Shown here one piece after another: positions 1 through 64,000 of a DNA stretch of 64,000 nucleotides. Position 1 is the first letter of the stretch. Each line of letters starts with the position of its first letter. Location of the stretch: the sequence record PQ464595.1; one strand, 5' to 3'. Both the position numbers and the translations under genes were made by a program. The notes under the pieces are model-generated. The model was not told the origin of the DNA, did no database searches, and saw only the letters and a program-made list of their open reading frames with translations.

Positions 1-1139
1 CCATCAATGAACTTTAGCCAATCTTCATGACCTGGGTGACGTGGACTACCTGGATGTGTAGGTTCTGACGCACCTTGCACAACAGGGATTTCAGTACCTT
101 CAAGATCCATACGTAGTGCTTCATCCATAGTTAGGTTCTCACCTAGTACTTCACGAACTGAAATCATTAGTTCTTTTAGAATGTCTTGTTCAGTACGATC
201 AGATTTCTGAAGTTCAGTTAGGCTTTCTTGAAGATCGAAATCAAATACAAATTCAGCAAGATTCTGATCTTCGATATTATATGTTTCCATAACTGCTTTG
301 ATAGCTTCTAGGTATTCACCTTCACTAATCTTAATGTTATCAACTAAGAAAACATCATCAGACATGAATCGTGCTACCTCGGCTTCTAGTTCTTCAAATG
401 CCTGAACAATATCCGCATAGTTTTCATCAGAAAATGCATCAAGTATATTACGCATTTCTTGTACTTCTTTTTCATGACGTGCCGCAGCATCAATTTTAGC
501 ATTTTTCTCTGCGTCGATAGTCAGTTCACGTACTGCTTTCAGATTATCACGAATTTCCTGAATTTGTTCTTCAGTTAGTTCATCATCTGGTATGATAGTT
601 TCAGGTTCTTCTGAACGAGAAGTTTGTAGCAGACGGACAGTACCGGTAGCTTGATTATAAGTACTGTAATCAATAACAACGTTACATTGTTTCTCAATGA
701 GTACTAGACCATTTTCAGTACTGATAGATACTAGACCATCGTAAGTACTAAGTTGACCTAGTTTGAATTCTTTAGTTAAAAGATAATCAATTTGTGGGTC
801 ACGGTCAAAGATGATTGCCATTGCTGCTAGTGGTTCATCAGATTTTTGTTCAGCAAATGCTTCCTGTACTGAACCTTCAGTGTAAGAAGAATTTTCCTTA
901 ACAATATCTTCAACGACATTAATTAGGCTGAATTCTTTACCATCAACTTCTAGTTCAAACGTTACTAGACCTTTGGTTGGAATAACTTCAATGTACATGA
1001 TAGCATGTTTTGGAGTTACCGAGTAACGAACGATACTAACATTACCGATAGCTGACTGTAGCTTGTCCTTTAGGACTTGAACAGACGTAATGCCTTCGAT
1101 GTTAACTAGTACTTGAATGACGGATTTAGTATTAATCAT
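1..1139 (-). CDS. Hypothetical acidic protein, 5' part only (runs off the window edge)
   Basis: Not in the ORF track. I read ATG at 1139 with a GGAG RBS upstream; the frame stays open to the window end (MINTKSVIQVLVNIEG...). Glu/Asp-rich. A TATAAATA element lies at 1174-1181. Confidence 0.8.
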   Translation of the reverse strand, partial: MINTKSVIQVLVNIEGITSVQVLKDKLQSAIGNVSIVRYSVTPKHAIMYIEVIPTKGLVTFELEVDGKEFSLINVVEDIVKENSSYTEGSVQEAFAEQKSDEPLAAMAIIFDRDPQIDYLLTKEFKLGQLSTYDGLVSISTENGLVLIEKQCNVVIDYSTYNQATGTVRLLQTSRSEEPETIIPDDELTEEQIQEIRDNLKAVRELTIDAEKNAKIDAAARHEKEVQEMRNILDAFSDENYADIVQAFEELEAEVARFMSDDVFLVDNIKISEGEYLEAIKAVMETYNIEDQNLAEFVFDFDLQESLTELQKSDRTEQDILKELMISVREVLGENLTMDEALRMDLEGTEIPVVQGASEPTHPGSPRHPGHEDWLKFID

Positions 1140-1199
1140 ATAACACTCCATGTTGTATAAAAAAAGGTAGAACTATTTATAAAATTGATCATTCTTTGA

Positions 1200-1685
1200 T
1201 CAGTTCGATTCTTTGAGGACAGTTCTAATATCCTCGTAACTTGCACTGAGCCAGTCGAATCCTTCTGGCATTATAACTCTACCATGATACTCATAGTAAT
1301 GAACAAATGGTAAAGTACTTTCTTGTAATAATTTGGCTATAGCTGGATTATGAGCAATCTTAGTTACTAACATATTCTCCATGATTTCTAAATCTTCATG
1401 AGATAATCCGAGAACGTCCAGCCTGTCGTCTCTATATTTACGTCCAGCTTTTTTGGCTTCGAAACCATGTAGTTCTCTGAGATCGTCATGTTGTTGACCT
1501 GTAAGATACCAGTACCAGAACCCTTCAGCACTGGTAAAGTACCCATAAGGTTCATAGACGAATGGAGAACGGGCGAAGTTTGATAGTAGTCTGCCTAATT
1601 CAGTTCTGGCTTGACTATAGATGTTGATGTGCGTTACGCCATCTTCTTCGGGGTCGTAAATGGGGGTTATATCGAATTCAAACAT
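1200..1685 (-). CDS. NADAR-like (YbiA/T4 gp30.3-type) ADP-ribosyl hydrolase
   Basis: LSNFARSPF...FTSAEGFW and MLVTKIAHNPAIAKLLQES match the NADAR pattern LSNF..PF / S.E / L.AKF.QNP.L..LL. Start moved to ATG 1685, which has GGAAG upstream. Confidence 0.6.
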   Translation of the reverse strand: MFEFDITPIYDPEEDGVTHINIYSQARTELGRLLSNFARSPFVYEPYGYFTSAEGFWYWYLTGQQHDDLRELHGFEAKKAGRKYRDDRLDVLGLSHEDLEIMENMLVTKIAHNPAIAKLLQESTLPFVHYYEYHGRVIMPEGFDWLSASYEDIRTVLKESN

Positions 1686-1700
1686 TTTACTTCCATGTGA

Positions 1701-1724
1701 AAAACCCCTCACTAGGAGGGGTTC
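1701..1724 (-). terminator. Intrinsic terminator
   Basis: CCCCTC-ACTAG-GAGGGG stem with a U-tract on the minus strand. Confidence 0.7.
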
Positions 1725-1729
1725 AGGTA

Positions 1730-2080
1730 TTAATATGGGTCTGAGTTGTGGGTATCATCACCTGGATTGCCACGAGTACGGTTAATGTCAATATAGACAC
1801 CAGCAGCGTTCTTGGCCTGACACTGATCCATCCACCACGAGTACTGCGTTTGAGCATTCGTGATCATACCTTGCGTGGAGCAAGAACCCATTTTGTACAG
1901 TTTAACTGAACATAACAGTGTAGCGATAATAACTGCTGCCAGCATAGTTTTTAGGAAGCGTTTCATGTTATCACCGATAACGAGAACCCAATCATCCTTT
2001 AACCAGTACTTCGCAAACAGAAACCATACGCCGAAGTTCAGGAACATGAACAACAGAACTACGAGAAAGTACTTAATCAT
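1730..2080 (-). CDS. Hypothetical membrane protein
   Basis: Two N-terminal hydrophobic helices and a Cys-containing C-terminal part. Confidence 0.7.
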   Translation of the reverse strand: MIKYFLVVLLFMFLNFGVWFLFAKYWLKDDWVLVIGDNMKRFLKTMLAAVIIATLLCSVKLYKMGSCSTQGMITNAQTQYSWWMDQCQAKNAAGVYIDINRTRGNPGDDTHNSDPY

Positions 2081-2083
2081 TTG

Positions 2084-2398
2084 TTAGCCCCATAATTTGG
2101 CATGTTGAATAACCCACTGTAAACGAAGATCGTTCTGGTGAGCAGATTTTTTACGCACTTCTTCTGAATAGTCATTACCGTTATAGTTAAACGGATATGA
2201 AACATTCAACTTAGCATTCCGTAACTGTTGGCGTAGTTCTTTGAAAATAGCAATACTTTTTAAATTAGTATTACTATAACGAAGAACACAGTCACACAAA
2301 CCAACATCAGTACTGAATAGTGGATGATTAGGAGTTCCATCTTTAATCCACTTCAGATATTCACGATAGAATCGTGTCAGTTCGTTAGATTGATCCAT
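2084..2398 (-). CDS. Hypothetical protein, paralog of 2385-2729
   Basis: Shares the motifs Y..W...GTP.H..FS...GLC, PFN and H.N..R..WV..HA with its neighbour. Confidence 0.75.
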   Translation of the reverse strand: MDQSNELTRFYREYLKWIKDGTPNHPLFSTDVGLCDCVLRYSNTNLKSIAIFKELRQQLRNAKLNVSYPFNYNGNDYSEEVRKKSAHQNDLRLQWVIQHAKLWG

Positions 2399-2729
2399 TT
2401 GAACTATCCAGCATAGCGTGAACCATAACCCACTTGATACGATGTTCGTTCAGGTGAGATTTGTTAAAATGCATTTCATCAATAAATTCTGAACGAGATG
2501 CGTTAAATGGGAACATATAATCTAAGTTCTCACTTTCGAATATTTTTTTCAATTCTGGATAAGCATGAAGTACTGAACCATTTTCCACCTTATCAGTACT
2601 CAAAAGATAATCCATCCACATACGGCATAAGCCGTTCCGAATGCTGAAAATTTCGTGTGATGGTGTACCTTTATTGAACCAGCTAATATAGTCGCGACAG
2701 AAGTCTGTCATTGCTTGAGATTGTTGCAT
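2385..2729 (-). CDS. Hypothetical protein, paralog of 2084-2398
   Basis: Same shared motifs; tandem arrangement. Confidence 0.75.
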   Translation of the reverse strand: MQQSQAMTDFCRDYISWFNKGTPSHEIFSIRNGLCRMWMDYLLSTDKVENGSVLHAYPELKKIFESENLDYMFPFNASRSEFIDEMHFNKSHLNEHRIKWVMVHAMLDSSNGSI

Positions 2730-2732
2730 GAT

Positions 2733-2906
2733 TTATTCCTCAGTACTGAAACATTTAGCAGTAACGATAGTAAGATTACCATTAGCGAACCGACTCTTAG
2801 CTTTCGGTAATGACTGTTTCTCACAAGTTTCAACATCCACTTTAAGTGGGATTTGAACTGTAGTCGGATTACCGTTTAATGACAAGATAAGAATGATGAT
2901 TGACAT
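2733..2906 (-). CDS. Small hypothetical protein, 57 aa, not in the ORF track
   Basis: MSIIILILSLNGNPTTVQIPLKVDVETCEKQSLPKAKSRFANGNLTIVTAKCFSTEE; GAGG RBS; fills the gap directly behind a sigma70 promoter. Confidence 0.7.
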   Translation of the reverse strand: MSIIILILSLNGNPTTVQIPLKVDVETCEKQSLPKAKSRFANGNLTIVTAKCFSTEE

Positions 2907-2938
2907 ACTAGCCTCACTTAAATTATTAACTTGATGCT

Positions 2939-2967
2939 AGTGTAACAGAACTCTCAGGATTCGTCAA
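2939..2967 (-). promoter_or_regulatory. Sigma70-type early promoter
   Basis: TTGACG-17 bp-TACACT. Confidence 0.65.
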
Positions 2968-3524
2968 GCAGTTTTTCTGAAATTCTCAAACAAATCTATA
3001 AGAGCCAGTACTGAAATGTCATCTTCTACTAGATCATGAGTGAACGCTTCAGGTGAATCTATTTTAAACCATTTGCCGTTAACAAGCAAGTCTTCATCAT
3101 GAAAAACAATACTATGAATAACTTTCTCACTATTGGACAAATTATGATGCCAGTTCTCTACGACTTGTAGTTTAACAATTCTGTCACGTGTGCAAGTAAT
3201 AACAACATGGAACGAAGTCAATGTAGGTGAGCTTAAATTACCAGAACCAGTATACGATGAAACTGTATAAACCGCAGGTAATGTAGTTACACCTGGTTGG
3301 ATTTGCATTGATGATAATGAAGGTACTACAGGTGGTGGATTAAATCGTTCTGCTGTAGCAGCTTTCTTAAATTTATAAACATTAGGTTTAGGAATACTGA
3401 TTGTTAGATTATGGAATAGATAATCTTCTGCGTAGTCCAGTACATCAAAGTTACACTTGTTAATAGTGTCTAGTAGAGATTCGACTTCTGCGAACCAATC
3501 AATAAATGGGATTTTTCTTTCCAT
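2964..3524 (-). CDS. Hypothetical protein
   Basis: 186-aa ORF, GGAG RBS, no recognisable motif. Confidence 0.7.
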   Translation of the reverse strand: MERKIPFIDWFAEVESLLDTINKCNFDVLDYAEDYLFHNLTISIPKPNVYKFKKAATAERFNPPPVVPSLSSMQIQPGVTTLPAVYTVSSYTGSGNLSSPTLTSFHVVITCTRDRIVKLQVVENWHHNLSNSEKVIHSIVFHDEDLLVNGKWFKIDSPEAFTHDLVEDDISVLALIDLFENFRKTA

Positions 3525-3540
3525 ATTTGCTCCATGCGAA

Positions 3541-3565
3541 AAAGCTGCCCCGAAGGACAGCTTTT
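3541..3565 (-). terminator. Intrinsic terminator
   Basis: AAGCTG.CC-CGAA-GG.CAGCTT stem flanked by A and T tracts. Confidence 0.6.
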
Positions 3566-3572
3566 GTATAAC

Positions 3573-4124
3573 TTAGTGAAGTTTAATAACTTCTTGACGA
3601 TGTGTTTCGAAAGCTTTCGCAGTACGATCATCAGTTACGATGGTACACAGCTTTTCGATGTTGTTGCCTGGGTATTTAGCACTGAGGAACATGCTTGACC
3701 AGACGCGACCACGGAATTCTTCGTAATCAGAACATACATCCGTCTTCTTATTTTGTGCGTTCTTGAAAGCTTCACGACCTGCGTCGATTGTCACCATCAG
3801 AGTTTCGTACATCTTAGGAGACAGGTTCGGCATGTTTTGCTGGACGAAAGAACGAATGTAAGTTTCGTCTTTGTTACGTCCTTCGAAGTACGCTTTAAGC
3901 GTTTTCTGAAGGTCTTCAGCGTACATTGCTGGAATCTGAGCTTGTTCCTGCACTTTCAGAGTATAGGTGCTCAGTTGTGTCTGACTTGCCAGATCGTTAC
4001 GCTTGATATTAGTTTCAAACGCATTGGCCTTGTTGTTTACGCTGGTGTAAGTACCAACTACCCCAAGGAATCCCAATACCAGTACTACCACAGTTGAGAT
4101 TAAGATTGCTGTTCCGAGTTTCAT
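3573..4124 (-). CDS. LemA-like membrane-anchored coiled-coil protein
   Basis: Start moved to 4124 (ATGA overlap with the upstream stop). N-terminal TM helix, then Y..VNN.AN.FE.NI and a helical body as in the LemA family. Confidence 0.55.
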   Translation of the reverse strand: MKLGTAILISTVVVLVLGFLGVVGTYTSVNNKANAFETNIKRNDLASQTQLSTYTLKVQEQAQIPAMYAEDLQKTLKAYFEGRNKDETYIRSFVQQNMPNLSPKMYETLMVTIDAGREAFKNAQNKKTDVCSDYEEFRGRVWSSMFLSAKYPGNNIEKLCTIVTDDRTAKAFETHRQEVIKLH

Positions 4125-5215
4125 AGATCTACTTTCCTCATGTAATTGCCGACTAATAATGATGATACCGCAGCTAAGATGGAGCAGAGAATAACTACCC
4201 ACAAGCTAGGTTCAAGTTTGTATTTCAGATATTCAAATTCCGCATTAGGCAGACGTTTGAAGTTCTGGTTAATATCTTTCACTAAAATCTGAACTAAGTC
4301 AAGTGACATTTGTTCAGACATGGCATCCATACGCAGTTTGCTATGAAGCAGTTCGTTATTAGATCCTTGAGCGAATGAAGTACTGGAAAAGTTACGAACT
4401 GAACCAGTTTCATCTAACGCTGCGAACATGATAACGTCATTCTTCTTACCACCACGCCACTTACCGAGGATAGCTTTCGGTAATTCAGCATCTTTGACAG
4501 GATAAAGTACTAGCACGATGTTAACTTGCTTAGCTGCCCCCATGTCACGGAGTGCCGAATTCAGGTAATCATTATAGCCTGTTACGCTATGGTTCGTCAA
4601 GTTCAATACGTGATTTACCCGATAATAATCGTATACTTCAGGGTACTCAGGTAGAGACTTTTTGTACGCTTCAGTGTAATCACGCTGATATTCTTTTTCA
4701 TGGAACAATGATTCTTCATTGCCCAGGAGATAGTTAAAGTACGTGTGCTCAGTACTAGCAGGATCGCCAATCTGAATCATAGACCAGCGAGGCGGTGTTG
4801 CTGTACCTTGACGGTTCACACGTTCGATAGTATGAGAATCAACTGAAGTTTTAACCCGCCAATCTACTTCATATGAATAATCGAACACTTTATATGATTC
4901 ACAACTCTTTTGTCGCTTACCATGACTATCAGTGTAGTATGAACATTTCTCATGCCACGTATAGTGTTTACAGGAACTGCTTTGTGAACACCATTCTACA
5001 TGACGTGATTTGCTCAGTACTTTGCCGTTTAAAATCTCAGTATCAGCCATTGAAGCATAAATGCTTGCGTAGGTAACACCCATCATGATAGCAATACTGG
5101 CACATACTGCTAAGAAGTGATATAGACACTCTTTAGTAGTGATAGTGTGACTGTACTTGTATTTCATGATGATCATAATCAGTAATGCTGGTAAAGCAAT
5201 AATGAAGAAGTTCAT
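4121..5215 (-). CDS. Membrane protein with Cys-rich extracytoplasmic region and TPM-like domain
   Basis: Two N-terminal TM helices and one C-terminal; VNIVLVL...WRGGKKNDVIMF resembles TPM domains; translationally coupled to the LemA-like gene. Confidence 0.45.
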   Translation of the reverse strand: MNFFIIALPALLIMIIMKYKYSHTITTKECLYHFLAVCASIAIMMGVTYASIYASMADTEILNGKVLSKSRHVEWCSQSSSCKHYTWHEKCSYYTDSHGKRQKSCESYKVFDYSYEVDWRVKTSVDSHTIERVNRQGTATPPRWSMIQIGDPASTEHTYFNYLLGNEESLFHEKEYQRDYTEAYKKSLPEYPEVYDYYRVNHVLNLTNHSVTGYNDYLNSALRDMGAAKQVNIVLVLYPVKDAELPKAILGKWRGGKKNDVIMFAALDETGSVRNFSSTSFAQGSNNELLHSKLRMDAMSEQMSLDLVQILVKDINQNFKRLPNAEFEYLKYKLEPSLWVVILCSILAAVSSLLVGNYMRKVDL

Positions 5216-5254
5216 GGTTTAGCCCTATTATTGGTTAACAGGGCTATTCTAGCA

Positions 5255-5944
5255 TTAAGCGGCGGGAACGTCAAGCGGTTTTACAAGATCCAGCATGTAA
5301 CGAGTCATCAGAGATTCTTTAGCAGCGTCAAATACAGGATTGTGTAAGCACAATGGGAACATTTTGTCAAGAGAATCTACTTCTTCGACGAATGCATCTA
5401 AGTGCGGTTGAATAGCTTCTTTCATAGCTTCTTCTTGTTCTTTCGAAAGTAGCATACGAAGGGTACGAACGTTCTGAGGTGAAGTGTAGTTCCACAAAGT
5501 ACCTTCACCGAACATTACACGGTGGTTCTCTTGTAGAATACTACAATCGAAATGGCAACCATTACCAAATACTTTAGTACTGAATTTTGGATCATCAGAA
5601 CCGTGAAGGAACCATTTAAGGATACTTGGAATGTTAGTAGATTCGTAAACAGTACCGTCACCACGAATAGCAGTTGGACGTTCAAGTTTGAATGACTTTT
5701 GCATTTCGCAAAGAGCAAGGGGGAATTCCTGAGCACAAGCGTTAAACCAGAAGTCCATAGTACGGGCATCTACTTTCAAGCCTAGATCAAGTTGTTCCTG
5801 TATAGGAAGTTGAATGTACAGCCAATCCATTTCATGGGTCAGTACTTCAGGGATACGCACAACGGCGTAGTTAGGGATTACAATGTTATAGCCTGAGTTC
5901 TCTGGTGTTGCTAGAGTCTCAATATCAATAGTACACATAGACAT
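5255..5944 (-). CDS. DEDDh 3'-5' exonuclease, T4 DexA-like
   Basis: ExoI IDIET, ExoII FGNGCHFDCSIL, ExoIII LHNPVFDAAKE. Confidence 0.75.
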   Translation of the reverse strand: MSMCTIDIETLATPENSGYNIVIPNYAVVRIPEVLTHEMDWLYIQLPIQEQLDLGLKVDARTMDFWFNACAQEFPLALCEMQKSFKLERPTAIRGDGTVYESTNIPSILKWFLHGSDDPKFSTKVFGNGCHFDCSILQENHRVMFGEGTLWNYTSPQNVRTLRMLLSKEQEEAMKEAIQPHLDAFVEEVDSLDKMFPLCLHNPVFDAAKESLMTRYMLDLVKPLDVPAA

Positions 5945-6264
5945 TATAGATTAACCACCTTATAATAAGTTTTTACTACTGTTTTTTCATGTTTTGTTAC
6001 GAATGAAAATACAGTATCTTCATATTCATAACCTTGGTAATAATCTCCAGTACGTTCAAGTTCTGCTTGAACAAATACTTCTAAATCTACAAATCCGAAA
6101 ACCATAGTTTTATGAGAACGACGGCCTTCATCTTCCCAAGCAGTTTCTTGTAAAAGATTATATTTAATTCCTTCGTCACCCCATTTACCTTCTGGATCAT
6201 CTTCATAATCCATTGAATCAATAAGTTCACCGAGTTTAGTTAGAAGTTCTTGTGTATATTCCAT
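5944..6264 (-). CDS. Hypothetical acidic protein
   Basis: Start moved to MEYTQ (6264) because the longer start lies inside the terminator. Confidence 0.7.
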   Translation of the reverse strand: MEYTQELLTKLGELIDSMDYEDDPEGKWGDEGIKYNLLQETAWEDEGRRSHKTMVFGFVDLEVFVQAELERTGDYYQGYEYEDTVFSFVTKHEKTVVKTYYKVVNL

Positions 6265-6281
6265 ACAAATTTTCCATAAGA

Positions 6282-6307
6282 AAAAACCCCGCAATGCGGG
6301 GTTTTGT
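6282..6307 (-). terminator. Intrinsic (bidirectional) terminator
   Basis: AAAAAACCCCGC-AAT-GCGGGGTTTT. Confidence 0.8.
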
Positions 6308-6321
6308 TTTAGTAACCGATG

Positions 6322-7470
6322 TTACTTTTTGTTAGCAATATCGCGGAGGGCGATTTTCAGGTCGTTGTCCATTTTTGCCATGCTAATGGCGGCCTGTTTG
6401 CGTTCCAAGCGACCAGCTTGTTCAATACGCATGGTTTCGTTGATACCGTTCAACATATCAGTCTGGATTGACTGGAGTGTTGCCAGGTCAACAACGCCAC
6501 GCTGGTTAGCTGCTGCCGCATCTTTCATGTTCTGAGCCACGTTTTTCGCGTTATCCTTCAACAGACGGTTCGTTTCATTGTCGATCATGTTCGACAGTTC
6601 GTTATCTTTCTTCTGCTGGAGGCTGATCAGAGAAAGACTCATGTTGTTTTTCCACGCTGGGATAACAACGGTGTTGAGAGATTCGAACTTCTCAACGGTG
6701 TTCATGTTAACTTTACGCATTGACGCAATTTGCGGTGCGGTCAATTTGGAAAGCTGTACCAGACGACGCAGTTTATCAGCCTGTTTATCCAGTGCGTCAG
6801 TCAGCATACGCTGTTCATCGAGAATGTTCATTGGAGTTTCTGGATCTGCCAGAAGTGCTGCCATTTTCACATCTTCGACTTCTTTCACCGCTTCCACGGA
6901 ATCCAGAATATCTTCCAGTTCATGGAGGTATTCGATATTCGCAGTGTAAGCATTGTTCAGCCACACGGCCTCACCACGCATACGAGTGATACCAGTGGTC
7001 AGAGTACCAGTGATTTTCTCAATCTGGTCTTTGCTGGTTTCGAACTGATCCAGTACTTTCTGTTTGGTATCACCAAAGATGTTCCAAACACGAGACAGCA
7101 GACCTGAACGTTGTTCACCGAGTTTGGTAATATCAACTTTACGGGTCAGTGTCAGAATGTTAGAAATACCTTCACCGAGTTCGCCAGTATCAGCAACTTT
7201 TACTTTTGACAGAATTTCTTCTGACAGTTTACCGATATTCTGACCAGCATCAGAACCGAGGGTATGGATGTTAGCGATGGTCAGTTCCATCGTAGTGCCC
7301 TTTGAGTCACGCAGTACTGGCAGGTTTTTCTCACTTTGAGTGATTTCTTCCTGGTCAAAGGTTTCCGGTTCACGCTGTTTTGTCGCCGCAGGTTTGCGTT
7401 TACGTGGCTGAGCTTTTTTAGGCTGAGGCTGTACTTCTTCGAAACCGTTGTTTGCGTCGTCAATTGCCAT
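6322..7470 (-). CDS. telA: TelA/KlaB-family toxic anion resistance protein
   Basis: Long helical protein with I..LGSDAG, ITAW/VIPAWK-like motif (NTVVIPAWKNNM) and NRGVVDLATL, typical of the TelA family. Confidence 0.75.
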   Translation of the reverse strand: MAIDDANNGFEEVQPQPKKAQPRKRKPAATKQREPETFDQEEITQSEKNLPVLRDSKGTTMELTIANIHTLGSDAGQNIGKLSEEILSKVKVADTGELGEGISNILTLTRKVDITKLGEQRSGLLSRVWNIFGDTKQKVLDQFETSKDQIEKITGTLTTGITRMRGEAVWLNNAYTANIEYLHELEDILDSVEAVKEVEDVKMAALLADPETPMNILDEQRMLTDALDKQADKLRRLVQLSKLTAPQIASMRKVNMNTVEKFESLNTVVIPAWKNNMSLSLISLQQKKDNELSNMIDNETNRLLKDNAKNVAQNMKDAAAANQRGVVDLATLQSIQTDMLNGINETMRIEQAGRLERKQAAISMAKMDNDLKIALRDIANKK

Positions 7471-7524
7471 GATGGTAATTCCTTCATTCTAAGTTAATGG
7501 GAGATTGCTGTCTTGTTGAGATAC

Positions 7525-7553
7525 ATAGTACAGCAATCTTCAGGGTTCGTCAA
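7525..7553 (-). promoter_or_regulatory. Sigma70-type early promoter of the telA-like gene
   Basis: TTGACG-17 bp-TACTAT, overlapped by a 10-bp inverted repeat (7502-7511 / 7530-7539). Confidence 0.75.
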
Positions 7554-7573
7554 GGATTATTTTACTTTATTTC

Positions 7574-8848
7574 TTAACGCGGTCCAGTACTACGAGTACC
7601 TTTTTCTGCCATGTCGCCCTTTTCAGAATCGACTTCTTCAACCGCGTCAATATAAACCTGTACTGGATCAACTGGTTCGTCTGATTCAGTAGGAGCATTA
7701 TACCCGTTATTTTTCGGGGATGCAACTACATTTTCACGATAAGCCAGGCCACGGATGATATTAACAGTTTCATCATCGACACGTTTAGATGCCTGATTCT
7801 GAAGTTTAACAATCAACAGTGGAACTACTACTTCCTGTACTTCTTTGAGCTTGCTCAAATCTGACAGGAACTTTTTATGAATAGTGCTAAGTGACAATTC
7901 CGAGATTTCGGTTGTCGCACGAATTTTCATCAAACGTTCCTGACGCAGTTCGAACTCATACGGATCTTCATCAGTCGCAATAACATACTGACAACCAATG
8001 ATACCGTGCTCAACGCGATCTTTGATTTCACCGATATTACCCTGAATGCCTTTAAAGACTTCAGAGATACCGCTAAAGCGGTGCGGGTCAACCGAAACAG
8101 CGTTACGTAAAGTACTGAGAATAGTACTCAAATCTTCCTGTTTAACTTCGATGGCTTTAGTTCCACCGAACATACGTTGCATGAACGTTGGTTTCAGTGG
8201 GAACATACCTTCGAGTACAGTAGTCAAGTTGTTCATAACACCGTGAATGTAATCACTGTTATTTTTCAGAATCTGAACAAGTTTAATTTGTTCTTCTGAC
8301 AACGCTTGAGTACTGACAGTAATTTCCTGAGAACATACTTCAAAGTTCTCAACCCAATCCAGTACTAGCATTGGCTGGAACTCTACGTTTGCTTTCATGC
8401 CGATAATGGCTGGCAGACGTTTGTCGTTCTCGCTCAGTTCTTTACGCTCGAATACAATCGGTGCTGGAATGTCCGGCATTGCTGGATTGTTATTCTGAAG
8501 TACTACAGGTTTAGCTTTCCCATCGAGAAAGTCCTGATACTCTTGCTGTAAGCGAGGAACCGGAAGATCTTCAATGCGGATTTTACCGAAGTAAATATCA
8601 TCCAGCATCATTTCGAGCACACGCAGACGAACGCTATCATAGAAGATTTCGTTCAAGTTCAACGGGCGAACATCAAAGATCGGCATACCAGTACCGTCAT
8701 ATGTACGGCTAACGATTACGTTGAAAATATACTTCTTAGCAACGTTCTTATCAAATACCTTCAGCAAACTATTGCGAACGTAGTTGTAATCGAATTCCTG
8801 AATCTCAATGTTAGAACGACCATCGTTGAAGAAATATTTTCCTTTCAT
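7574..8848 (-). CDS. Hypothetical helical protein, probable TelA-operon partner (KlaA/XpaC-like)
   Basis: Adjacent to telA; helical C-terminal half with FMQRMFG, similar to the LLSRVWNIFG segment of TelA. Confidence 0.45.
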   Translation of the reverse strand: MKGKYFFNDGRSNIEIQEFDYNYVRNSLLKVFDKNVAKKYIFNVIVSRTYDGTGMPIFDVRPLNLNEIFYDSVRLRVLEMMLDDIYFGKIRIEDLPVPRLQQEYQDFLDGKAKPVVLQNNNPAMPDIPAPIVFERKELSENDKRLPAIIGMKANVEFQPMLVLDWVENFEVCSQEITVSTQALSEEQIKLVQILKNNSDYIHGVMNNLTTVLEGMFPLKPTFMQRMFGGTKAIEVKQEDLSTILSTLRNAVSVDPHRFSGISEVFKGIQGNIGEIKDRVEHGIIGCQYVIATDEDPYEFELRQERLMKIRATTEISELSLSTIHKKFLSDLSKLKEVQEVVVPLLIVKLQNQASKRVDDETVNIIRGLAYRENVVASPKNNGYNAPTESDEPVDPVQVYIDAVEEVDSEKGDMAEKGTRSTGPR

Positions 8849-8907
8849 GATTCATAATCTCGCAGTTAAATTAATAGGCTGGGGTGCATTATAGCACCCC
8901 AAAACGA

Positions 8908-9108
8908 TTAACGCCAGGAAATTTTAGCAACCGAGGCGATTGCTTCAACTTTCAGTACGACGAAATCTTTATCGGCATTCTCTTGTGCGAGACGAGCCGC
9001 TTCACCTTTAGCAACAGTCAGAGACATGTGCTCTTTAGGAGTAGCTGACGCAGAGAAACGTCCGTTATTTTTGTCGATACTAGCGACGATGTATTTTCCA
9101 GATTGCAT
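8908..9108 (-). CDS. Small hypothetical protein
   Basis: 66-aa ORF with a GAGG RBS. Confidence 0.7.
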   Translation of the reverse strand: MQSGKYIVASIDKNNGRFSASATPKEHMSLTVAKGEAARLAQENADKDFVVLKVEAIASVAKISWR

Positions 9109-9142
9109 TACTATATTACCTCTTTGTTATTGAATTTTGTTA

Positions 9143-9781
9143 TTAACGCAGGATGCCTAATTGACGCAGTTGAGCCAGGTCTTCTTCAGAAATACCAGCA
9201 GCTTTCAGTTGTTCAAGAACGTTAACTGATTTGCGAGTACCTTTAGCAGTTGGGGTTGTTGCGGTGGTTTCAGCGGTTTGAGAAGTTGGTGCTACCTGAA
9301 CTTCTTGAACTTCAATTACAGGATTCGCATTAACTTCTTCTACGTTTGCTGGTTCATCTGCTTCTTCATGAACGATGTTAGCAGTACCAGTATACGCAGC
9401 TTTGCGTTTAGCACGACGAGCTTCGTACTTAGCTTGTTCTTTTTCTTCACGAGCAGGAGCTTGTTCAGCACGATAAGCAGCGACACGAGCAGCTTCAGCT
9501 TCAATGTTAGTCTGACGACGAACAGATTCACCTTTAGGTACTACGTCAAAGCTATCGTACAGACCTGGGATGATAGTCACTTCACCAGTTTCAGTGTTAC
9601 GAACTACAGCATACAGCAGGTCGGCTTTGTCTACAGCACGGAGGTTCAACCCACCAACAGTACCAGACTCGTTCAGAACGGCCTGAGTGTATTCTACCAT
9701 AGACTCGTCATGAGTAATGGAGGTAACGTTGGTTGCTTTATAGGTAACGCCTTCGGTGTATACGAAATGTACAGTACTCAT
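9143..9781 (-). CDS. Hypothetical early protein
   Basis: Follows a near-consensus sigma70 promoter; host-like codons (CTG); Ala/Glu/Lys-rich helical middle. Confidence 0.75.
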   Translation of the reverse strand: MSTVHFVYTEGVTYKATNVTSITHDESMVEYTQAVLNESGTVGGLNLRAVDKADLLYAVVRNTETGEVTIIPGLYDSFDVVPKGESVRRQTNIEAEAARVAAYRAEQAPAREEKEQAKYEARRAKRKAAYTGTANIVHEEADEPANVEEVNANPVIEVQEVQVAPTSQTAETTATTPTAKGTRKSVNVLEQLKAAGISEEDLAQLRQLGILR

Positions 9782-54341: not shown

Positions 54342-54345
54342 AAAT

Positions 54346-54810
54346 TTATTCTAATCTTGCGTCTTCAATGCCAGCGGTTCTCAATCGAACAATGTTGTTC
54401 AACTGGAATGCTTTCATTTCCAACGACTTTACTATACCAGCCAATTGATTTCTTATATAAGCCACATCAGCGATTAATAATGCTAATGCCACTACATCAG
54501 GATCACCCTCGACGTATTTTTTACAGTCAGAACTTGTTAGAGCACGTTTGTAGTGCTCTAGTAGTAATTTGAATTTCTCGGATTCTAATTGTTTCATTTC
54601 GATTTCGAGAATTTCCATAACTGCTTCTACTTCTTGGAATTGACTGAAGCGGAGTTCATGATAAGCTGGCAATTGTTGAGATATTTTTTCAATAACTCCA
54701 ATTTGTTTGATTTCTCTACGTGCTTCTTCCAATTCACCTTCGAAAAAATCAACCATGTCGATAATCTTTGACTTATCATCTTTGATAATCCAATGCCATG
54801 CTCTAGCCAT
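54346..54810 (-). CDS. uvsY: UvsY-like recombination mediator
   Basis: YKRALTSSDCKKYVEGD; helical; located between uvsX and uvsW. Confidence 0.75.
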   Translation of the reverse strand: MARAWHWIIKDDKSKIIDMVDFFEGELEEARREIKQIGVIEKISQQLPAYHELRFSQFQEVEAVMEILEIEMKQLESEKFKLLLEHYKRALTSSDCKKYVEGDPDVVALALLIADVAYIRNQLAGIVKSLEMKAFQLNNIVRLRTAGIEDARLE

Positions 54811-54811
54811 A

Positions 54812-55945
54812 TTATTCCTCTACGCTATCCGGTACTTCAATGTCTACACCAAAGTTTTCATCACCCTTTTCAGCATCAGAAAGAACAGTAGCAATTAATG
54901 GATGGCGAGTAAATTGAGCCATTACTAAATCTAGACATTCATTTTCATTATTCATCCAACCTTTGCGATATAGAAGAATTTCTTCACCAGTATCAATATC
55001 AATATATGATAGACGGTTTCCTGACTTCAGGATTAGACCATACTTTTCAAACATATCAAGAAGACCACTACGAGGATTCATGCCTTTATCCCAAGGAATT
55101 TTGATTTCCACATCTTCAAATGGTTTGTTGTAACGTGTCTTCATGACTTTACATTTAGAACGAATACCACTTACATCAGAAGTCTTGTTACCATCTTCAT
55201 CTTCTTTTAGTTTTAGTTTACCCATCGCAACAACGATTGAGGAAGCATAAACTAAACCAGAACCACCACTGATTTTAGGATCAGGGCTGAACATATCTTG
55301 GCTTTCATATGAGTGGTTTACACATACCATTCCCATATTCAACGCACCAATGCTGTTTACACAGTTAGTGATGAATGCTTTCAACTGCTTAGGTTTGTGA
55401 CCCATGTCACCTTTTAGATTACCAGCTTTCATTTGATCGTTAGCAATTTCAGTATTCAACATACCGATACTATCAATAATGAATAGAACTTTTTGACGTT
55501 CATCACGTGGTACATCTTCGTATTCTTTACGATAACCTTCAATGAATTCATAAGTGAATTTGGCAACATCACCAATCATACCCATGTTCATTTTAAGTAG
55601 TTTCTCAGGAGACGTATCTACACCAAGTGCTTGTAGCCATTCTGAGTCCAATGCGTTCTCGGAGTCAATAATAACTACGAAAATACCTTGTTGTTGTGCT
55701 TCACGAGCAATATTACCAGATACGATGAATGATTTACCGGAACCGGATTCACCAGCAAACATTGTTACTTTGCCAAGTGGAATACCCTTTTTAAAATCGC
55801 CACTAATACGGTAGTTAAGTGCGAAGTTGCCAGTACTAACCCAAGTATCAGGATCGTGGAATCCAATACTTACACCAGAGTTCTTTTTAACTGAGGCTGT
55901 ACTGTTTTTGATGATGGTTGCTAAACCCGCTGAAAAATTTTTCAT
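54812..55945 (-). CDS. uvsX: UvsX/RecA-like recombinase
   Basis: STGNFALN..ISG, GESGSGKS, DSENALD, IDSIGML, SGGSG. Confidence 0.92.
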   Translation of the reverse strand: MKNFSAGLATIIKNSTASVKKNSGVSIGFHDPDTWVSTGNFALNYRISGDFKKGIPLGKVTMFAGESGSGKSFIVSGNIAREAQQQGIFVVIIDSENALDSEWLQALGVDTSPEKLLKMNMGMIGDVAKFTYEFIEGYRKEYEDVPRDERQKVLFIIDSIGMLNTEIANDQMKAGNLKGDMGHKPKQLKAFITNCVNSIGALNMGMVCVNHSYESQDMFSPDPKISGGSGLVYASSIVVAMGKLKLKEDEDGNKTSDVSGIRSKCKVMKTRYNKPFEDVEIKIPWDKGMNPRSGLLDMFEKYGLILKSGNRLSYIDIDTGEEILLYRKGWMNNENECLDLVMAQFTRHPLIATVLSDAEKGDENFGVDIEVPDSVEE

Positions 55946-55967
55946 ATTAATCTCTCCATGAAATGAA

Positions 55968-55992
55968 ATTGGGACAAATCCTTTGTCCCAAT
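55968..55992. terminator. Hairpin/terminator after the ssb gene
   Basis: ATTGGGACAAA-TCC-TTTGTCCCAAT. Confidence 0.7.
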
Positions 55993-56004
55993 AAATTTTA
56001 ACTA

Positions 56005-57051
56005 TTAGTTACCGCTTTTAGCCTTTAGTTTAGCTACTAAATCTGCTGGTGATAGCTTCTCTTTTGGTGCTGCTTCGGTTGAAGCTGCTGGAGTTGCCGC
56101 AGGAGCAGTTTCAGTTTCTACAGACTTGCTTTCAACTACTGGTGCTGCTACTGGAGCAGTGGTAGTTTTAGCTGCTGGTACTGAAGTTGGAGTTTCAGAG
56201 GTTGAACCAGTTGCTGGTTTCTGAACACCTGCTGGGCGATAGAACGCAGCCCAACGTGCTGGATCATACGCTTCACCATTTACGGATGCTTCGAACATCT
56301 CTTTGATAGCTACTAGTTCCTCTGGAGTTGGCTGTTTAGGCATGAACTCGCTAAGGTTGAATAGACCGTATGTTTCTACAGCGGTGCGTTCGTCTTGGTT
56401 TAGTGGACGCTCGGAGAATTTGAACTGTGATGCATCGTAGTTATTGAATCCACCAGCGTTCTTTGACTTGATCACGCGGAAATCGCGGCCATGTTCAATA
56501 TCGGTTGGTAGTTCTTCAACATCAGGGTTCATTAGGATTGATTTGATCTTCTCGAACAAATCTTTGTTCACTAGAACGCGACGGATTGGATTCTCTGGAG
56601 CATTGTCATCTTTGACTTCTACAGAGTTTGGTGCAATCAGGCATTGGAATAGATATGATTTCTTTTTCCAGTACTTAGATGCTTGTTTAGAAAGATCTTC
56701 GTTTCCAGTTTCTTTCGCGATTTTATACCACTGACGAATCTCGGTAAGAATCGGACAAGAGTTAGCAACCCACATTTCATTACATGGTACTTGTAGACGA
56801 ACTTTATCGGTGTGAACACCTTTAACGCCGTTGAATTCGAGATTAATCATCTCACGTTCACGCCAGAAGTACTGGTTATTGTGGTCGCCATCTGGAAGAA
56901 AGCGTAGGTTAAGATCAGCATTCTCTGGAATGTTCCAGAAAGCTAGGAATGCATCCGGTTGGCGTTCGCCAGTGAATGTTCCGTTTTTTACTGCGTCTTG
57001 TTTTGCTTGTTCTGCTGCTAATAGAGCACGAATTTCTGCTAATGATGCCAT
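56005..57051 (-). CDS. gp32: Single-stranded DNA-binding protein (T4 gp32-like)
   Basis: LRFLPD, CPI, YWKKKSY, GRDF.VIK..GGFNNYDASQF; low-complexity C-tail. Confidence 0.85.
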   Translation of the reverse strand: MASLAEIRALLAAEQAKQDAVKNGTFTGERQPDAFLAFWNIPENADLNLRFLPDGDHNNQYFWREREMINLEFNGVKGVHTDKVRLQVPCNEMWVANSCPILTEIRQWYKIAKETGNEDLSKQASKYWKKKSYLFQCLIAPNSVEVKDDNAPENPIRRVLVNKDLFEKIKSILMNPDVEELPTDIEHGRDFRVIKSKNAGGFNNYDASQFKFSERPLNQDERTAVETYGLFNLSEFMPKQPTPEELVAIKEMFEASVNGEAYDPARWAAFYRPAGVQKPATGSTSETPTSVPAAKTTTAPVAAPVVESKSVETETAPAATPAASTEAAPKEKLSPADLVAKLKAKSGN

Positions 57052-57133
57052 TTTGATTTCCTTATCAATTTGTTTCTTTGTTACTAAGTTTTGCTTCTTT
57101 GTTTGTCATTGGCTCCTTGCCTTTGACATTTCT

Positions 57134-57230
57134 ATTATACCACAATTTCTTGTGGTGTTTCATCTTTTTTCCGTTTTTTCGTCTCGGATGACTACCCAAG
57201 GTTTCGCTTGGTTATGTACATTATACCACA
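57134..57230 (-). promoter_or_regulatory. Tandem extended -10 promoters upstream of the ssb gene
   Basis: TGTGGTATAAT at 57134-57144 and at 57220-57230. Confidence 0.75.
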
Positions 57231-57277
57231 AAATGGTTTAACGTTCCATCTATTTACTGAAGTGGGGTTGGGAGCTT

Positions 57278-58579
<1,302 letters not shown>

Positions 58580-58602
58580 TCAAATCTGTATAGATATATT
58601 TA

Positions 58603-60943
<2,341 letters not shown>

Positions 60944-60986
60944 AATCTTCCTTAAAAAGTACTGCCAAAGGCAGCACTCTATTCAT

Positions 60987-62470: not shown

Positions 62471-62660
62471 TTAAGGAACTCCATTTTCCATAATTTACTT
62501 CATTATACCACATTTTCCAAGGTGGTTTCACATATGAAATAAATAGTTGCATACAAACATTTTGATTAAATTTTTTACGTTATTAATAGTAACGAAAAGG
62601 ATTTGATAAATAACATTAAGCAGGTATTAAGCCTGCACCAAATTAACAAGGAGATTTCTA

Positions 62661-63221
62661 ATGAGTCTTAATTCTTTTGATCGTAACTATGGTATGTCTG
62701 CTAATAGTCGCGAATTTTGGGGTGGTGACAATGGTTTCGTAACTGTTGTTGTAACTCTACCTGCTGATGTAGAAATCGGCGTTTCTGCTGTAGCATTCGA
62801 TGGTACTGAAGCTGGTGATAATGCCGCTCAAACCGCTCTATCTGCTGCTGAGAAAAACCAATTCATCATCGCTCAAGCTCTTGCTCAACGTGCGGTTCTA
62901 GTAACCACTTCTGCGTTGTCAACTGATGTTGATCCTACTGCTGCTGGTTTTGAAACTGTTGGTGGAAACGTAATCGCTTTCGGTTCCGCTGGTACTCTTG
63001 CTGATGGTTCTTTCGGTATTACTTATATCGTTGAACGCCAAGACGTGTTTACCAAACAAGAAGGTAAACCAGGTTCTACTTACGCACTAGTTGTTGATCC
63101 AACTACAGAAATCGCTACCACTCTAGCACAAGCTGGTGTATTCCAGAAGAAAGACGGTACTCCCGCTCTTGCTGCTGCTGTTGGTATCAAAGTGTTCAAA
63201 GCACTTCCAGTACTACTATAA
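62661..63221 (+). CDS. Abundant virion structural protein, paralog 1
   Basis: ATAAATA at 62539 and 62606, GGAG RBS, strongly biased codons, Ala/Val/Thr-rich. Confidence 0.65.
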   Translation: MSLNSFDRNYGMSANSREFWGGDNGFVTVVVTLPADVEIGVSAVAFDGTEAGDNAAQTALSAAEKNQFIIAQALAQRAVLVTTSALSTDVDPTAAGFETVGGNVIAFGSAGTLADGSFGITYIVERQDVFTKQEGKPGSTYALVVDPTTEIATTLAQAGVFQKKDGTPALAAAVGIKVFKALPVLL

Positions 63222-63238
63222 TTCAAGGAGAATAAAAT

Positions 63239-63895
63239 ATGTTAGAACGTATTAATGGTTTCTCCGAATCTGGAGTACTAGGTTATTTCTATGGTAAGAA
63301 CGCTCTAGTTTCTATCGCTATCGGCGGTGCTTCAAACGTAGTTGTTAAAGTTACTGGTGCTGTGGCATCTTTCGCTGAACTACAACGTTTCCTAAACACT
63401 GAAGATGTTGACGCTATCGTAGAATTCCTAAACGATAAAGGTGTTGTTCGTGTTGATGGTACAGAGTTCGTAGCTGTTTCCCTAGAAGCTGACTATACCG
63501 CTGCTTATGCCGCACAAACTAACGTTAAACGTGTTATCGACATTGTTCAACAACGTGCTGTAGTACTAAGTACTTCTCTAACCGCTCAAGGCGTAGCTGT
63601 TGCTGGTTTCCGTAATGCCCCTTCAGGTGTTACTGCTGCTGCTTCTGTTCCTGCTGCTAACGTTATTACTTTCCTAGTAGAACGTGCGAACGTGTTCGAT
63701 AAAGACCTAGTAACCTTCCAAGGTGTACCAGCTAACCAAATCGACGAAGGCCGTCTACTAATTGATGACCTAACAGGTGTACCAATGCTAACTGCTACTG
63801 GTACTGAAGTAATCCTAGCATCTTCAGCTACTGCTGCTACTGCTGGTAACTTCGCGATTAAAGTTTACAAAGCTATCCCAGCATTGTCAATCTAA
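63239..63895 (+). CDS. Abundant virion structural protein, paralog 2
   Basis: Shares QRAV.., VER..VF.K and IKV.KA.P.L with paralog 1. Confidence 0.65.
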   Translation: MLERINGFSESGVLGYFYGKNALVSIAIGGASNVVVKVTGAVASFAELQRFLNTEDVDAIVEFLNDKGVVRVDGTEFVAVSLEADYTAAYAAQTNVKRVIDIVQQRAVVLSTSLTAQGVAVAGFRNAPSGVTAAASVPAANVITFLVERANVFDKDLVTFQGVPANQIDEGRLLIDDLTGVPMLTATGTEVILASSATAATAGNFAIKVYKAIPALSI

Positions 63896-63907
63896 TAAAT
63901 CCAAACG

Positions 63908-63938
63908 AAAAAAGGACGCTATAAGCGTCCTTTTTTTT
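63908..63938. terminator. Bidirectional terminator
   Basis: AAAAAAGGACGC-TATAA-GCGTCCTTTTTTTT. Confidence 0.85.
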
Positions 63939-64000
63939 ATTCATAAATTTTGAAATTCGGATCAATAGAACCAGTCGGTTGATTCATCTCGTCGTTTACG
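63937..64000 (-). CDS. 3' end of a gene entering from beyond the window
   Basis: Open frame ...VNDEMNQPTGSIDPNFKIYE ending with TAA at the terminator. Confidence 0.5.
   Translation of the reverse strand, partial: VNDEMNQPTGSIDPNFKIYE

Follow-up and report, generated by a model that had tools for sequence, protein, structure and literature searches.

Lytic phages usually avoid six-base palindromes, and the question raised by the DNA considered here is why one lineage of jumbo phages should hoard one of them, AGTACT, along its whole genome. The window, meaning the entire stretch of 64,000 nucleotides that was analysed, corresponds with 100% identity to record positions 124001-188000 of Erwinia phage Kaldavass (PQ464595.1), a 366,556-bp Rak2/GAP32/CBB-like jumbo myovirus whose isolation host is Erwinia aphidicola. 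It carries a replication, recombination and packaging module (topoisomerase II, clamp loader, helicases, primase, UvsX/UvsY, single-strand-binding protein and terminase), with 87 annotated genes, nearly all on the minus strand, 96% of the sequence coding and a GC content of 38.2%. Tests in the window were based on the GenBank gene annotation, and genome-wide tests on gene calls from a simple open reading frame rule, which recovers 79 of the 87 annotated window stop positions.

In the window, AGTACT occurs 168 times against 21.0 copies expected from mononucleotide composition (one per 3 kb), an 8.0-fold excess, and the whole Kaldavass genome contains 1,114 copies against 120.8 expected (9.2-fold), or one per 329 bp. 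Every complete 10-kb bin of the genome is enriched, with 18-58 copies each, and the word ranks first in enrichment among all 4,096 hexamers of the window, followed by CAGTAC and GTACTG, which are its own overlaps. A first-pass annotation, made from the letters of the window, had reported this over-representation in three reading frames up to the window's end; the coordinates it listed are all true AGTACT starts, exactly 30 copies lie at or before position 8499, and its estimate of ~37% GC, with one copy expected per 3 kb, agrees well with the measured values. The "roughly 10-fold" enrichment it had given stands as a strong excess, with the measured figures being the two given above.

The enrichment is independent of coding. 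Among the 166 sites lying wholly within annotated coding sequences (CDS), 83 are read as AGT-ACT (Ser-Thr), 62 as xxA-GTA-CTx (Val-Leu) and 21 as xAG-TAC-Txx (K/Q/E-Tyr). Synonymous permutation within genes, which keeps the protein, its dipeptides and its codon usage, yields 38.6 +/- 5.8 copies in the window against the 166 observed (z=22), while a shuffle that also keeps the dinucleotides at codon junctions yields 72.5 +/- 6.0 (z=15.6) and permutation of codon order yields 22.9. Each of the three frames exceeds the within-gene synonymous shuffle by 3.6-4.7-fold, so that no single codon pair explains the word, as had been proposed. The choice of codons is correspondingly skewed, with AGT-ACT encoding 83 of the window's 123 Ser-Thr dipeptides (17.8 expected) and an A-ending codon found ahead of GTA-CTN in 62 of 81 cases, against 31% overall. 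Across the genome, coding copies number 1,021 against 254.9 under the synonymous shuffle (z about 72), and the 24.7 kb of intergenic DNA hold 94 copies where about 8 are expected (about 11-fold). Given that the enrichment survives the coding shuffles and is also found in intergenic DNA, the signal resides in the DNA and not in translation, and a codon or dipeptide artefact is ruled out on the same grounds. The DNA-level signal that had been postulated within the coding sequence is thus borne out, by the shuffles that preserve codons and dipeptides as well as by the retention in relatives described below.

Word composition on a smaller scale does not account for the excess either. An order-3 Markov model, built on GTAC and the remaining 4-mers, puts the window at 71 copies, and therefore the frequency of GTAC is no explanation. 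An order-4 model predicts 145, a result which is circular because 63-65% of AGTAC 5-mers lie within AGTACT; T follows these 5-mers at that rate although it makes up 32-33% of bases. It is the order-4 comparison that had been suggested at the outset. The mirror word ACTAGT, made of the same two codons in reversed order, is depleted: the window has 9 copies and the whole genome 74. The pressure extends to the proteins, and the proteome is reshaped. Throughout the genome, 58% of the 1,767 positions where the protein permits AGTACT carry it, with opportunities realised in 63% of cases for Ser-Thr (13.8% expected from codon usage), 48% for K/Q/E-Tyr followed by a T-initial codon and 57% for Val-Leu preceded by an A-ending codon. 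Ser-Thr is also the most over-represented dipeptide (1.50-fold, with Thr-Ser at 1.00-fold), Gln-Tyr (CAG-TAC) is second at 1.46-fold, and Val-Leu stands at 1.28-fold against 1.01-fold for Leu-Val.

The full motif is CAGTACTG, a word with 8-bp dyad symmetry. It is present 194 times in the genome against 4.4 expected (44-fold), and 168 times in coding sequence against 22.7 under the synonymous shuffle. Enrichment climbs with length, from 2.5-fold for GTAC, and 2.4-fold for AGTAC without a following T, to the 9.2-fold of AGTACT and the 44-fold of CAGTACTG. At flank position -1, C is found in 41% of the sites and G in 8%, against a background of 19%. Neighbours with one mismatch are found at 1.23-1.33 times expectation for the NGTACT classes, 1.33 for AGAACT and 1.49 for AGCACT; apart from the transition (deamination) neighbours AGTATT/AATACT, which are slightly low (0.91, z=-2.4), the classes range from 0.94 to 1.49, being either enriched (1.14-1.49) or near expectation (0.94 and 1.03). 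Three further words were recorded as follows.

AAGTACTT: 8.7-fold enrichment
TAGTACTA: 4.8-fold enrichment
GAGTACTC: 10 copies

AGTACT is enriched 5-10-fold in all the Rak2-like jumbo phages sampled, which include Mimasvirus, Hallingskeid, Asteriusvirus and RaK2. The counts (observed/expected) or enrichment in the sampled loci are given here.

XbC2: AGTACT 166/23
CBB: AGTACT 173/25
11 IMG/VR loci with a large terminase at least 86% identical (including GAP32, Yen9-04 and BF): AGTACT 5.2-8.0-fold
Hallingskeid: AGTACT 97/9.7
phAPEC6 (Asteriusvirus): AGTACT 48/10
SD-2_S15 (Asteriusvirus): AGTACT 50/10
RaK2: AGTACT 72/9.7 and CAGTACTG 10/0.19
15 loci with a large terminase 29-45% identical: AGTACT 0-1.4-fold

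Among the records of the phage collection, large-terminase identity falls from at least 60% (73 records) directly to about 32%, and the trait therefore maps onto one sharply bounded clade. The same flank rule, with C favoured and G disfavoured at position -1, is found in XbC2, CBB, Hallingskeid, phAPEC6 and SD-2_S15, that is in every member tested, which argues for one conserved reader. As a separate observation, GTAC is wholly absent from two IMG/VR contigs whose large terminase is 42-44% identical (0 vs 26 and 0 vs 17 expected).

Codon alignments with relatives, comprising 86 genes for XbC2 (90.9% nucleotide identity) and 78 genes for CBB (77.4%), show that AGTACT sites are preferentially kept at synonymous positions. 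Where the amino acids are conserved in XbC2, 88% of AGT-ACT, 84% of xxA-GTA-CTx and 79% of xAG-TAC-Txx sites are retained, against 69% for other hexamers; the corresponding values in CBB are 79%, 72% and 54%, against 43%. The check on synonymous conservation that had been recommended thus comes out in favour of the signal in both relatives. By three-taxon parsimony (Kaldavass, XbC2 and CBB), the loss per lineage is 0.093 for AGTACT and 0.180 for other hexamers. Individual sites nevertheless turn over: 66 are shared by all three phages, 60 are found in Kaldavass and XbC2 only and 55 in CBB only, with about 45% of the sites being lineage-specific at unchanged density and many of the differences involving amino-acid changes. 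This turnover at constant density indicates that it is the density which is conserved, with individual sites being replaceable, as in other genome-wide signal words. Since the split from XbC2, the Kaldavass branch has gained 23 sites and lost 5, and the word may still be accumulating in this lineage.

The sites in the window, and the features of their array, are listed below.

1..64000: dispersed array of 168 AGTACT sites, mean spacing 380 bp and median 293 bp, 166 of them within CDS in three frames
AGTACT starts in the window: 145, 660, 700, 717, 744, 1108, 1314, 1840, 2005, 2068, 2309, 2569, 2595, 2742, 3007, 4081, 4379, 4506, 4751, 5016, 5576, 5841, 7052, 7313, 7586, 8111, 8123, 8309, 8361, 8499, 9773, 10525, 10693, 11239, 11326, 11600, 12123, 12224, 12309, 12437, 12547, 12931, 13436, 13851, 14252, 16033, 16214, 16239, 16503, 16923, 17040, 17176, 17358, 17529, 17628, 17708, 18322, 18626, 18933, 19637, 20529, 21136, 21586, 21924, 21959, 22551, 23242, 23939, 24056, 24537, 24970, 24993, 25099, 25468, 25761, 26296, 26538, 27322, 27917, 28119, 28130, 28377, 28595, 29063, 29244, 29490, 29543, 29681, 30340, 30828, 30849, 32333, 32720, 33049, 33076, 33482, 33749, 34959, 35929, 36302, 36679, 37619, 38419, 38816, 38866, 39133, 39552, 40216, 40824, 40979, 41241, 41789, 42262, 42500, 42992, 43371, 43628, 43674, 43733, 43916, 44486, 44582, 44676, 45098, 45633, 46203, 46982, 47342, 47575, 49577, 49989, 50442, 50500, 50580, 51066, 51602, 52326, 52405, 52475, 52560, 52629, 52967, 53210, 53637, 54011, 55832, 56670, 56868, 57330, 57803, 58019, 58323, 58527, 58831, 59006, 59146, 59617, 60642, 60958, 61266, 61457, 61817, 62051, 62141, 63209, 63274, 63562, 63569
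716..58837: 18 copies of CAGTACTG within the array, starting at 716, 2308, 2741, 3006, 7312, 12436, 16922, 21135, 21585, 23241, 25098, 25467, 30827, 41240, 45632, 49576, 50579 and 58830
700..749: tightest local cluster, 3 sites (700, 717, 744) inside 50 bp
46982..46987: intergenic AGTACT upstream of the primase gene, context TGTGTCAGTACTTCGATCATTATACC, one of only two window sites not wholly in CDS
60958..60963: intergenic AGTACT at the base of a small hairpin, AGTACTGCC-AAA-GGCAGCACT, adjoining the terminase genes
47581..49576: largest site-free gap in the window, 2,002 bp between sites 47575 and 49577

At least one AGTACT is found in 39 of the 41 window genes of 600 nt or more; mobile HNH/homing-endonuclease genes and methyltransferase genes also carry the word, and the major head gene has only one site. 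The sites are spaced more evenly than chance. Across the genome, the coefficient of variation (CV) of spacing is 0.919 against 1.031 +/- 0.031 when sites are placed at random inside 10-kb bins, and under a stricter null, in which random subsets of the potential synonymous sites are drawn, it is 0.929 against 1.040 +/- 0.029, a value reached by 0 of 1,000 nulls. The largest gap in the genome, 2,016 bp, lies under the 5th percentile of random placement (5-95% range 2,055-3,444). Gaps shorter than 200 bp or longer than 1,200 bp are depleted and those of 200-800 bp are in excess, close pairs being rarer overall than chance. Potential sites are realised according to their distance from another site, in 51-54% of cases below 200 bp, 67% at 200-400 bp and 78% at 400-800 bp. 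This density-dependent realisation, together with the even spacing, fits selection for coverage and not an independent process acting on each site.

Intergenic sites are more often paired, with a neighbour within 30 bp for 31% of them against 13% of coding sites, and larger palindromes occur among the pairs, such as TCCAGTACTAGTACTGGA at record position 115896. Pairs 6-26 bp apart are located outside the window at record positions 10168/10188, 12894/12915, 51781/51789, 88058/88079 and 115899/115905; some of them combine into larger palindromes without mismatch (TCCAGTACTAGTACTGGA), which lie about 30 nt ahead of start codons. In the early region, some intergenic sites adjoin -35-like TTGCTT and -10-like TATAAT elements (AGTACTTGCTTT ... 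AGTACTATATAAT). These paired sites resemble operators or the MotA boxes of T4 middle promoters.

The accumulation of AGTACT takes place in a genome where palindrome avoidance, claimed beforehand for lytic phages in general, is strikingly developed. Not one GCGC is present in the 366,556 bp, where composition would give 494 and the synonymous shuffle gives 336, and 24 six-bp palindromes, all with four or more G/C, are likewise at zero; GATATC, TTGCAA and ATCGAT are nearly absent, and 33 words are avoided in all. GCGC is found 0-1 times in every AGTACT-rich relative. This total absence suggests a nuclease that the phage must not meet, possibly its own and aimed at host DNA. The contrast with bacterial DNA runs in both directions: AGTACT reaches 3.04 per kb in Kaldavass and 0.06 per kb in one 50-kb stretch of E. 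coli K-12 (positions 1,000,001-1,050,000; 3 copies vs 11.6 expected), a roughly 50-fold difference, while GCGC occurs at 6.8 per kb (one per about 150 bp) in the same stretch. The longer word CAGTACTG is not under-represented there (2 copies vs 0.8 expected).

The DNA carrying these sites has been compared, as native and as whole-genome-amplified material, by Nanopore sequencing, with GATC, CCWGG and TGCAT reported as modified motifs in Kaldavass and GATC and CCWGG in Hallingskeid (PMC11780129). AGTACT is not among the modified motifs of either phage (PMC11780129). In the same study, motif-associated nicks were described only in another phage, with nick-type coverage drops not reported for Kaldavass or Hallingskeid (PMC11780129).

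The explanation which is preferred, tentatively and at a little short of an even chance, is that AGTACT, optimally CAGTACTG, is a landmark on unmodified DNA which is maintained by selection and read by a putative dimeric protein conserved in the clade. Natural selection would keep the word dense and even along the whole genome of each Rak2-like jumbo phage sampled, and a putative sequence-specific protein with two-fold symmetry, presumably a homodimer conserved in the clade, would read the sites on ordinary unmodified duplex. Bound sites would then mark or organise the phage DNA about every 300 bp, and this marking could set it apart from the host chromosome, where AGTACT appears to be rare. 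We infer that the reader is a phage-encoded protein dimer with a marking or organising role rather than an enzymatic-processing one. The basis of this explanation is the independence from coding, the 8-bp dyad with its flank rule, the conservation across the clade, the retention of sites together with their turnover, the even and density-dependent spacing, the reshaped proteome and the lack of detected modification. Among the functions that had been suggested from the letters of the window, a DNA-organising or protective binding site, or a self tag, fits best, given the even spacing, the 8-bp dyad and the roughly 50-fold contrast with the host sample, while a methyltransferase target is disfavoured.

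Several points weigh against this explanation. A Pfam scan of ten window proteins (those annotated as helix-turn-helix or Dps-like and eight small virion proteins) returned only the generic HTH_37 and DUF5856. A contiguous palindrome of 6-8 bp is likelier for enzymes, such as restriction enzymes and methyltransferases, or for ribbon-helix-helix proteins than for classic helix-turn-helix dimers, so that the anatomy suits an enzymatic reader no less well than an architectural one. From substitution patterns by themselves, selection cannot be told from a drive by biased conversion, and it is the spacing result alone which favours selection. The lack of modification comes from one published R9.4.1/Tombo analysis with motifs assigned by manual inspection, in which N4-methylcytosine may have been under-called, and the host baseline is a single 50-kb sample of E. 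coli K-12, which is not the true host Erwinia aphidicola.

An alternative considered unlikely, albeit well above negligible, is that the sites are processed by the replication and recombination machinery of the phage rather than passively bound. They could be preferred starts for a DnaG-type primase, with the template 5'-AGTACTG-3' giving a primer pppAGUACU and the flanking G acting as cryptic base; preferred cutting points of the phage's type II topoisomerase (A|GTAC|T, with a 4-bp stagger); or entry or hotspot sites for recombination-dependent replication. A palindrome is independent of orientation and would serve forks coming from either direction, the even spacing with no gap above about 2 kb is on the scale of Okazaki fragments, and G is favoured at +1 and C at -1. 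The clade also encodes a primase, a DnaB-like helicase, topoisomerase II, UvsX/UvsY and an SbcCD-like nuclease, several of them within the window. The host Chi octamer GCTGGTGG is modestly enriched in Kaldavass against a codon-aware null (24 vs 9.9 on the coding strand, 2.4-fold, and 10 vs 4.1 for its complement), which hints at an interaction with RecBCD. However, it is the 6-bp core that is most strongly constrained, rather than the CTG of a DnaG-type site, and to our knowledge characterised primases require a trinucleotide only. Topoisomerase II lacks any link to AGTACT, the whole case is drawn from anatomy, and the published Nanopore data give no nick-type coverage drops for the two phages (PMC11780129). 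The Chi-like recombination cue that had been suggested for AGTACT survives only in a loose sense, the word being a palindrome and not the host Chi.

It has also been considered, as a rather unlikely elaboration, that the phage distinguishes self from non-self by sequence content, using two complementary words and no chemical modification. GCGC would be a negative tag, by which a phage nuclease could safely destroy host DNA, and (C)AGTACT(G) a positive tag, where a bound phage protein could draw replication, transcription, protection or packaging to phage DNA or restrict them to it. The premise is that Rak2-like jumbo phages are without a hypermodified base, and the pattern to be exploited would be the contrast in both words between phage and bacterial sample.

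Improbable, in turn, is a neutral origin in which directional mutation or repair, such as very-short-patch-like mismatch repair or gene conversion biased toward AGTACT, generates functionless sites. The word is spread over coding and non-coding DNA and essentially all genes, mobile HNH genes included, its deamination neighbours AGTATT/AATACT are marginally low, and gains exceed losses on the Kaldavass branch, all of which would fit such a drive. Nevertheless, a 4-9-fold drive should drain its source words, yet the neighbours stand at 1.14-1.49, 0.94 and 1.03, and the deamination class is only slightly low at 0.91. The drive also predicts a random subset of the possible sites, in contrast with the even spacing and density-dependent realisation observed; neither a modification of the motif nor a co-distributed methyltransferase is found to seed repair, and graded, dyad-symmetric specificity over 8 bp is not a product of short-context mutation bias. 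Very-short-patch-type repair was rejected in particular, as its one-step deamination neighbours show no marked depletion and the neighbour words are undrained. A double deamination from GCGC or GGTACC to GTAC or AGTACT was also rejected, the methylation context being lost after the first step and 94 expected sources standing against about 1,000 extra sites.

The proposal that a phage methyltransferase, or some other modification enzyme, acts on AGTACT, in a coupling of the HIP1 type, or that the word is a protected ScaI-type restriction site, appears quite improbable. The genome does encode three DNA methyltransferases, which were found when a methyltransferase or DNA-binding protein was sought as had been advised; none of them tracks the trait, and the Pfam scans yielded no specific reader.

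CDS0246: C5-cytosine methyltransferase (PF00145)
CDS0509: N4/N6-type methyltransferase with an SPPY motif (PF01555), the best solved relative being the N4-cytosine enzyme M.PvuII
CDS0605: phage Dam-family methyltransferase (PF05869)

In favour of the proposal, CDS0509 is of the N4-cytosine type, and CAGCTG, the site of M.PvuII itself, is absent from the Kaldavass genome. HIP1 offers a precedent for the coupling (PMC4390886). Even so, the three methyltransferases match the three modified motifs of Kaldavass, and AGTACT is missing from the Nanopore lists of both phages (PMC11780129). By presence and absence, CDS0509 fits TGCAT: it is confined to the Mimasvirus-type subclade, and Hallingskeid, Asteriusvirus and RaK2 lack it in spite of an equal enrichment in AGTACT. 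Its next homologue, in Cellulophaga phage phi18:3 (52.6% identity), lies outside the clade in a genome with 1.2-fold AGTACT, and CDS0509 was rejected as the cause. CDS0605 is clade-wide and fits the reported GATC methylation; in Geobacillus PK3.6, likewise outside the clade and with a homologue 52% identical, AGTACT stands at 0.1-fold, and this enzyme was rejected too. The names of the 120 best CDS0509 homologues in a collection of 5.8 billion proteins gave no information on specificity. Protection from restriction would explain why sites are tolerated, not why they are enriched 9-fold.

As regards TGCA, 69 copies are found in the window against 221 expected. TGCA/TGCAT is strongly depleted in Kaldavass and XbC2 (0.29-fold), enriched in CBB (430 vs 242) and not depleted in Hallingskeid. 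CBB nevertheless carries the CDS0509 enzyme as well. In Kaldavass, TGCAT is both depleted and modified, the Nanopore study having reported a modification of unassigned type at this word in Kaldavass only (PMC11780129).

Mimicry of the sites of the host nucleoid-occlusion factor SlmA (GTGAGTACTCAC, with an AGTACT core), through which phage DNA would block host division, is very unlikely. SlmA occurs in the same host range, the Enterobacterales, the phage core is identical to the centre of its site, and a division block is plausibly useful to a jumbo phage with long latency. The SlmA site is a 12-bp palindrome in which G1, T2, A4 and G5 are required and a purine is favoured at position 3 (PMC3020112). 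Only A4 and G5 are matched in the phage, where positions -3 and -2 show no surplus of G or T and a purine is found at -1 in just 35% of the sites (G 8%); near-consensus sites with three or fewer flank mismatches number 95 against 153 expected, fewer than chance, and the idea is largely refuted by these flanks. A resemblance to LexA or TrpR half-sites was dropped, as arrangement and flanks mismatch.

Finally, an indirect by-product of purging forbidden palindromes, or of a translational codon-pair preference for AGT-ACT, scarcely merits credence and is refuted, for although 33 words are purged from this genome and AGT-ACT for Ser-Thr makes up the largest class, a synonymous purge of all 33 words from shuffled genomes shifts AGTACT from 261.7 to 263.2 (+1.5 sites) against 1,021 observed, the other two frames and intergenic DNA are also enriched, and ACTAGT, with the same codons, is depleted.

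When compared to known systems, AGTACT finds its closest analogue in HIP1 (Highly Iterated Palindrome 1, GCGATCGC) of cyanobacteria. Both are short palindromes present above codon-aware expectation, in all frames and in non-coding DNA, conserved above background and quasi-regularly spaced, with a function that is not yet settled (PMC5861425, PMC4390886, PMC13756078). HIP1 differs in holding the targets of two orphan methyltransferases and in being methylated, whereas no modification is detected for AGTACT and no methyltransferase tracks it. AGTACT is not filed as a member of HIP1 because this methylation feature fails; it is also another word, it belongs to a lytic phage clade and not to a cellular phylum, and it coexists with extreme avoidance of other palindromes.

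AGTACT is not Chi, an uptake sequence, a SlmA site or a protected restriction site. Chi is asymmetric and orientation-dependent, and is defined by the host RecBCD. Uptake sequences (DUS/USS, in Neisseria and Pasteurellaceae) are asymmetric words of 9-12 bp which are read by a competence receptor in transformation. They and AGTACT can both be regarded as genome-wide 'self' words located in genes, which shape codon choice and are frequent in their own DNA and rare elsewhere, the rarity of AGTACT being that in the single 50-kb E. coli K-12 sample; uptake sequences differ in serving transformation, a process without counterpart in a lytic phage. Chi in phage genomes (Bobay, Touchon and Rocha 2013, PMC3784561) shares with AGTACT the over-representation of an oligomer within genes as a DNA-level cue to a DNA-processing machine, and AGTACT is distinguished from it in being a palindrome, in not being GCTGGTGG and in its far greater density (one per 329 bp). 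The sites of SlmA have the same central six bases and dyad symmetry, with a dimeric reader that for AGTACT is putative, yet the outer G1, T2 and purine 3 are not present, and are even disfavoured, at the phage sites. The ScaI site belongs to the same class of words as those subject to restriction-site avoidance (6-bp palindromes, type II sites), and here the sign is opposite, with a 9-fold enrichment. The T5-type nick motifs, such as WACTRTGAC in Pseudomonas phage Rembedalsseter, are likewise short conserved motifs dispersed through the genomes of a phage family, but they are strand-specific and asymmetric, with 13 per genome (PMC11780129), and no nick signal has been reported for Kaldavass. 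A search of 8.4 million papers and preprints brought up no previous description of AGTACT enrichment in any phage, these included, and the enrichment is unmentioned in the RaK2, CBB and Kaldavass papers.

The Rak2-like family thus takes textbook palindrome avoidance to an extreme and yet hoards one palindrome, bending codon choice and amino-acid order in hundreds of genes, a pattern which is a genomic footprint pointing to an undescribed sequence-reading machine. It suggests how a phage with unmodified DNA might tell its own DNA from that of the host. Some members of the clade, with E. coli, Klebsiella, Salmonella and plant-associated Enterobacterales as hosts, are candidates for therapy, and AGTACT sets constraints on recoding or engineering the phages of this clade. 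The combination of AGTACT excess and GCGC absence provides a simple compositional signature for the clade in metagenomes. E. coli K-12 together with Asteriusvirus would offer a fast, tractable system for the purpose of hyper-iterated palindromes such as HIP1, whose function is described as a question open for decades in the cyanobacterial papers.

Additional aspects of the window and its relatives were observed. On the coding strand of the window, AAAAAA is found 30 times against 120 under the synonymous shuffle, with AAAAAT and AAAATT low too, which probably reflects the avoidance of slippery or poly-Lys AAA runs. XbC2 is recorded as a Xanthomonas vesicatoria phage despite 91% identity in coding DNA to Erwinia phage Kaldavass; either its host range is unusually broad or the recorded host is in need of checking. 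The large terminase in the window is annotated as two adjacent CDS, 58603-60252 and 60254-60943, and in a tblastn search its 549-aa piece covers 2,311-2,356 nt in close relatives, which suggests a split gene or an intervening element at 58603-60943. Several other replication genes, with DNA polymerase pieces at 14682-15200 and 48386-49036, likewise look fragmentary.

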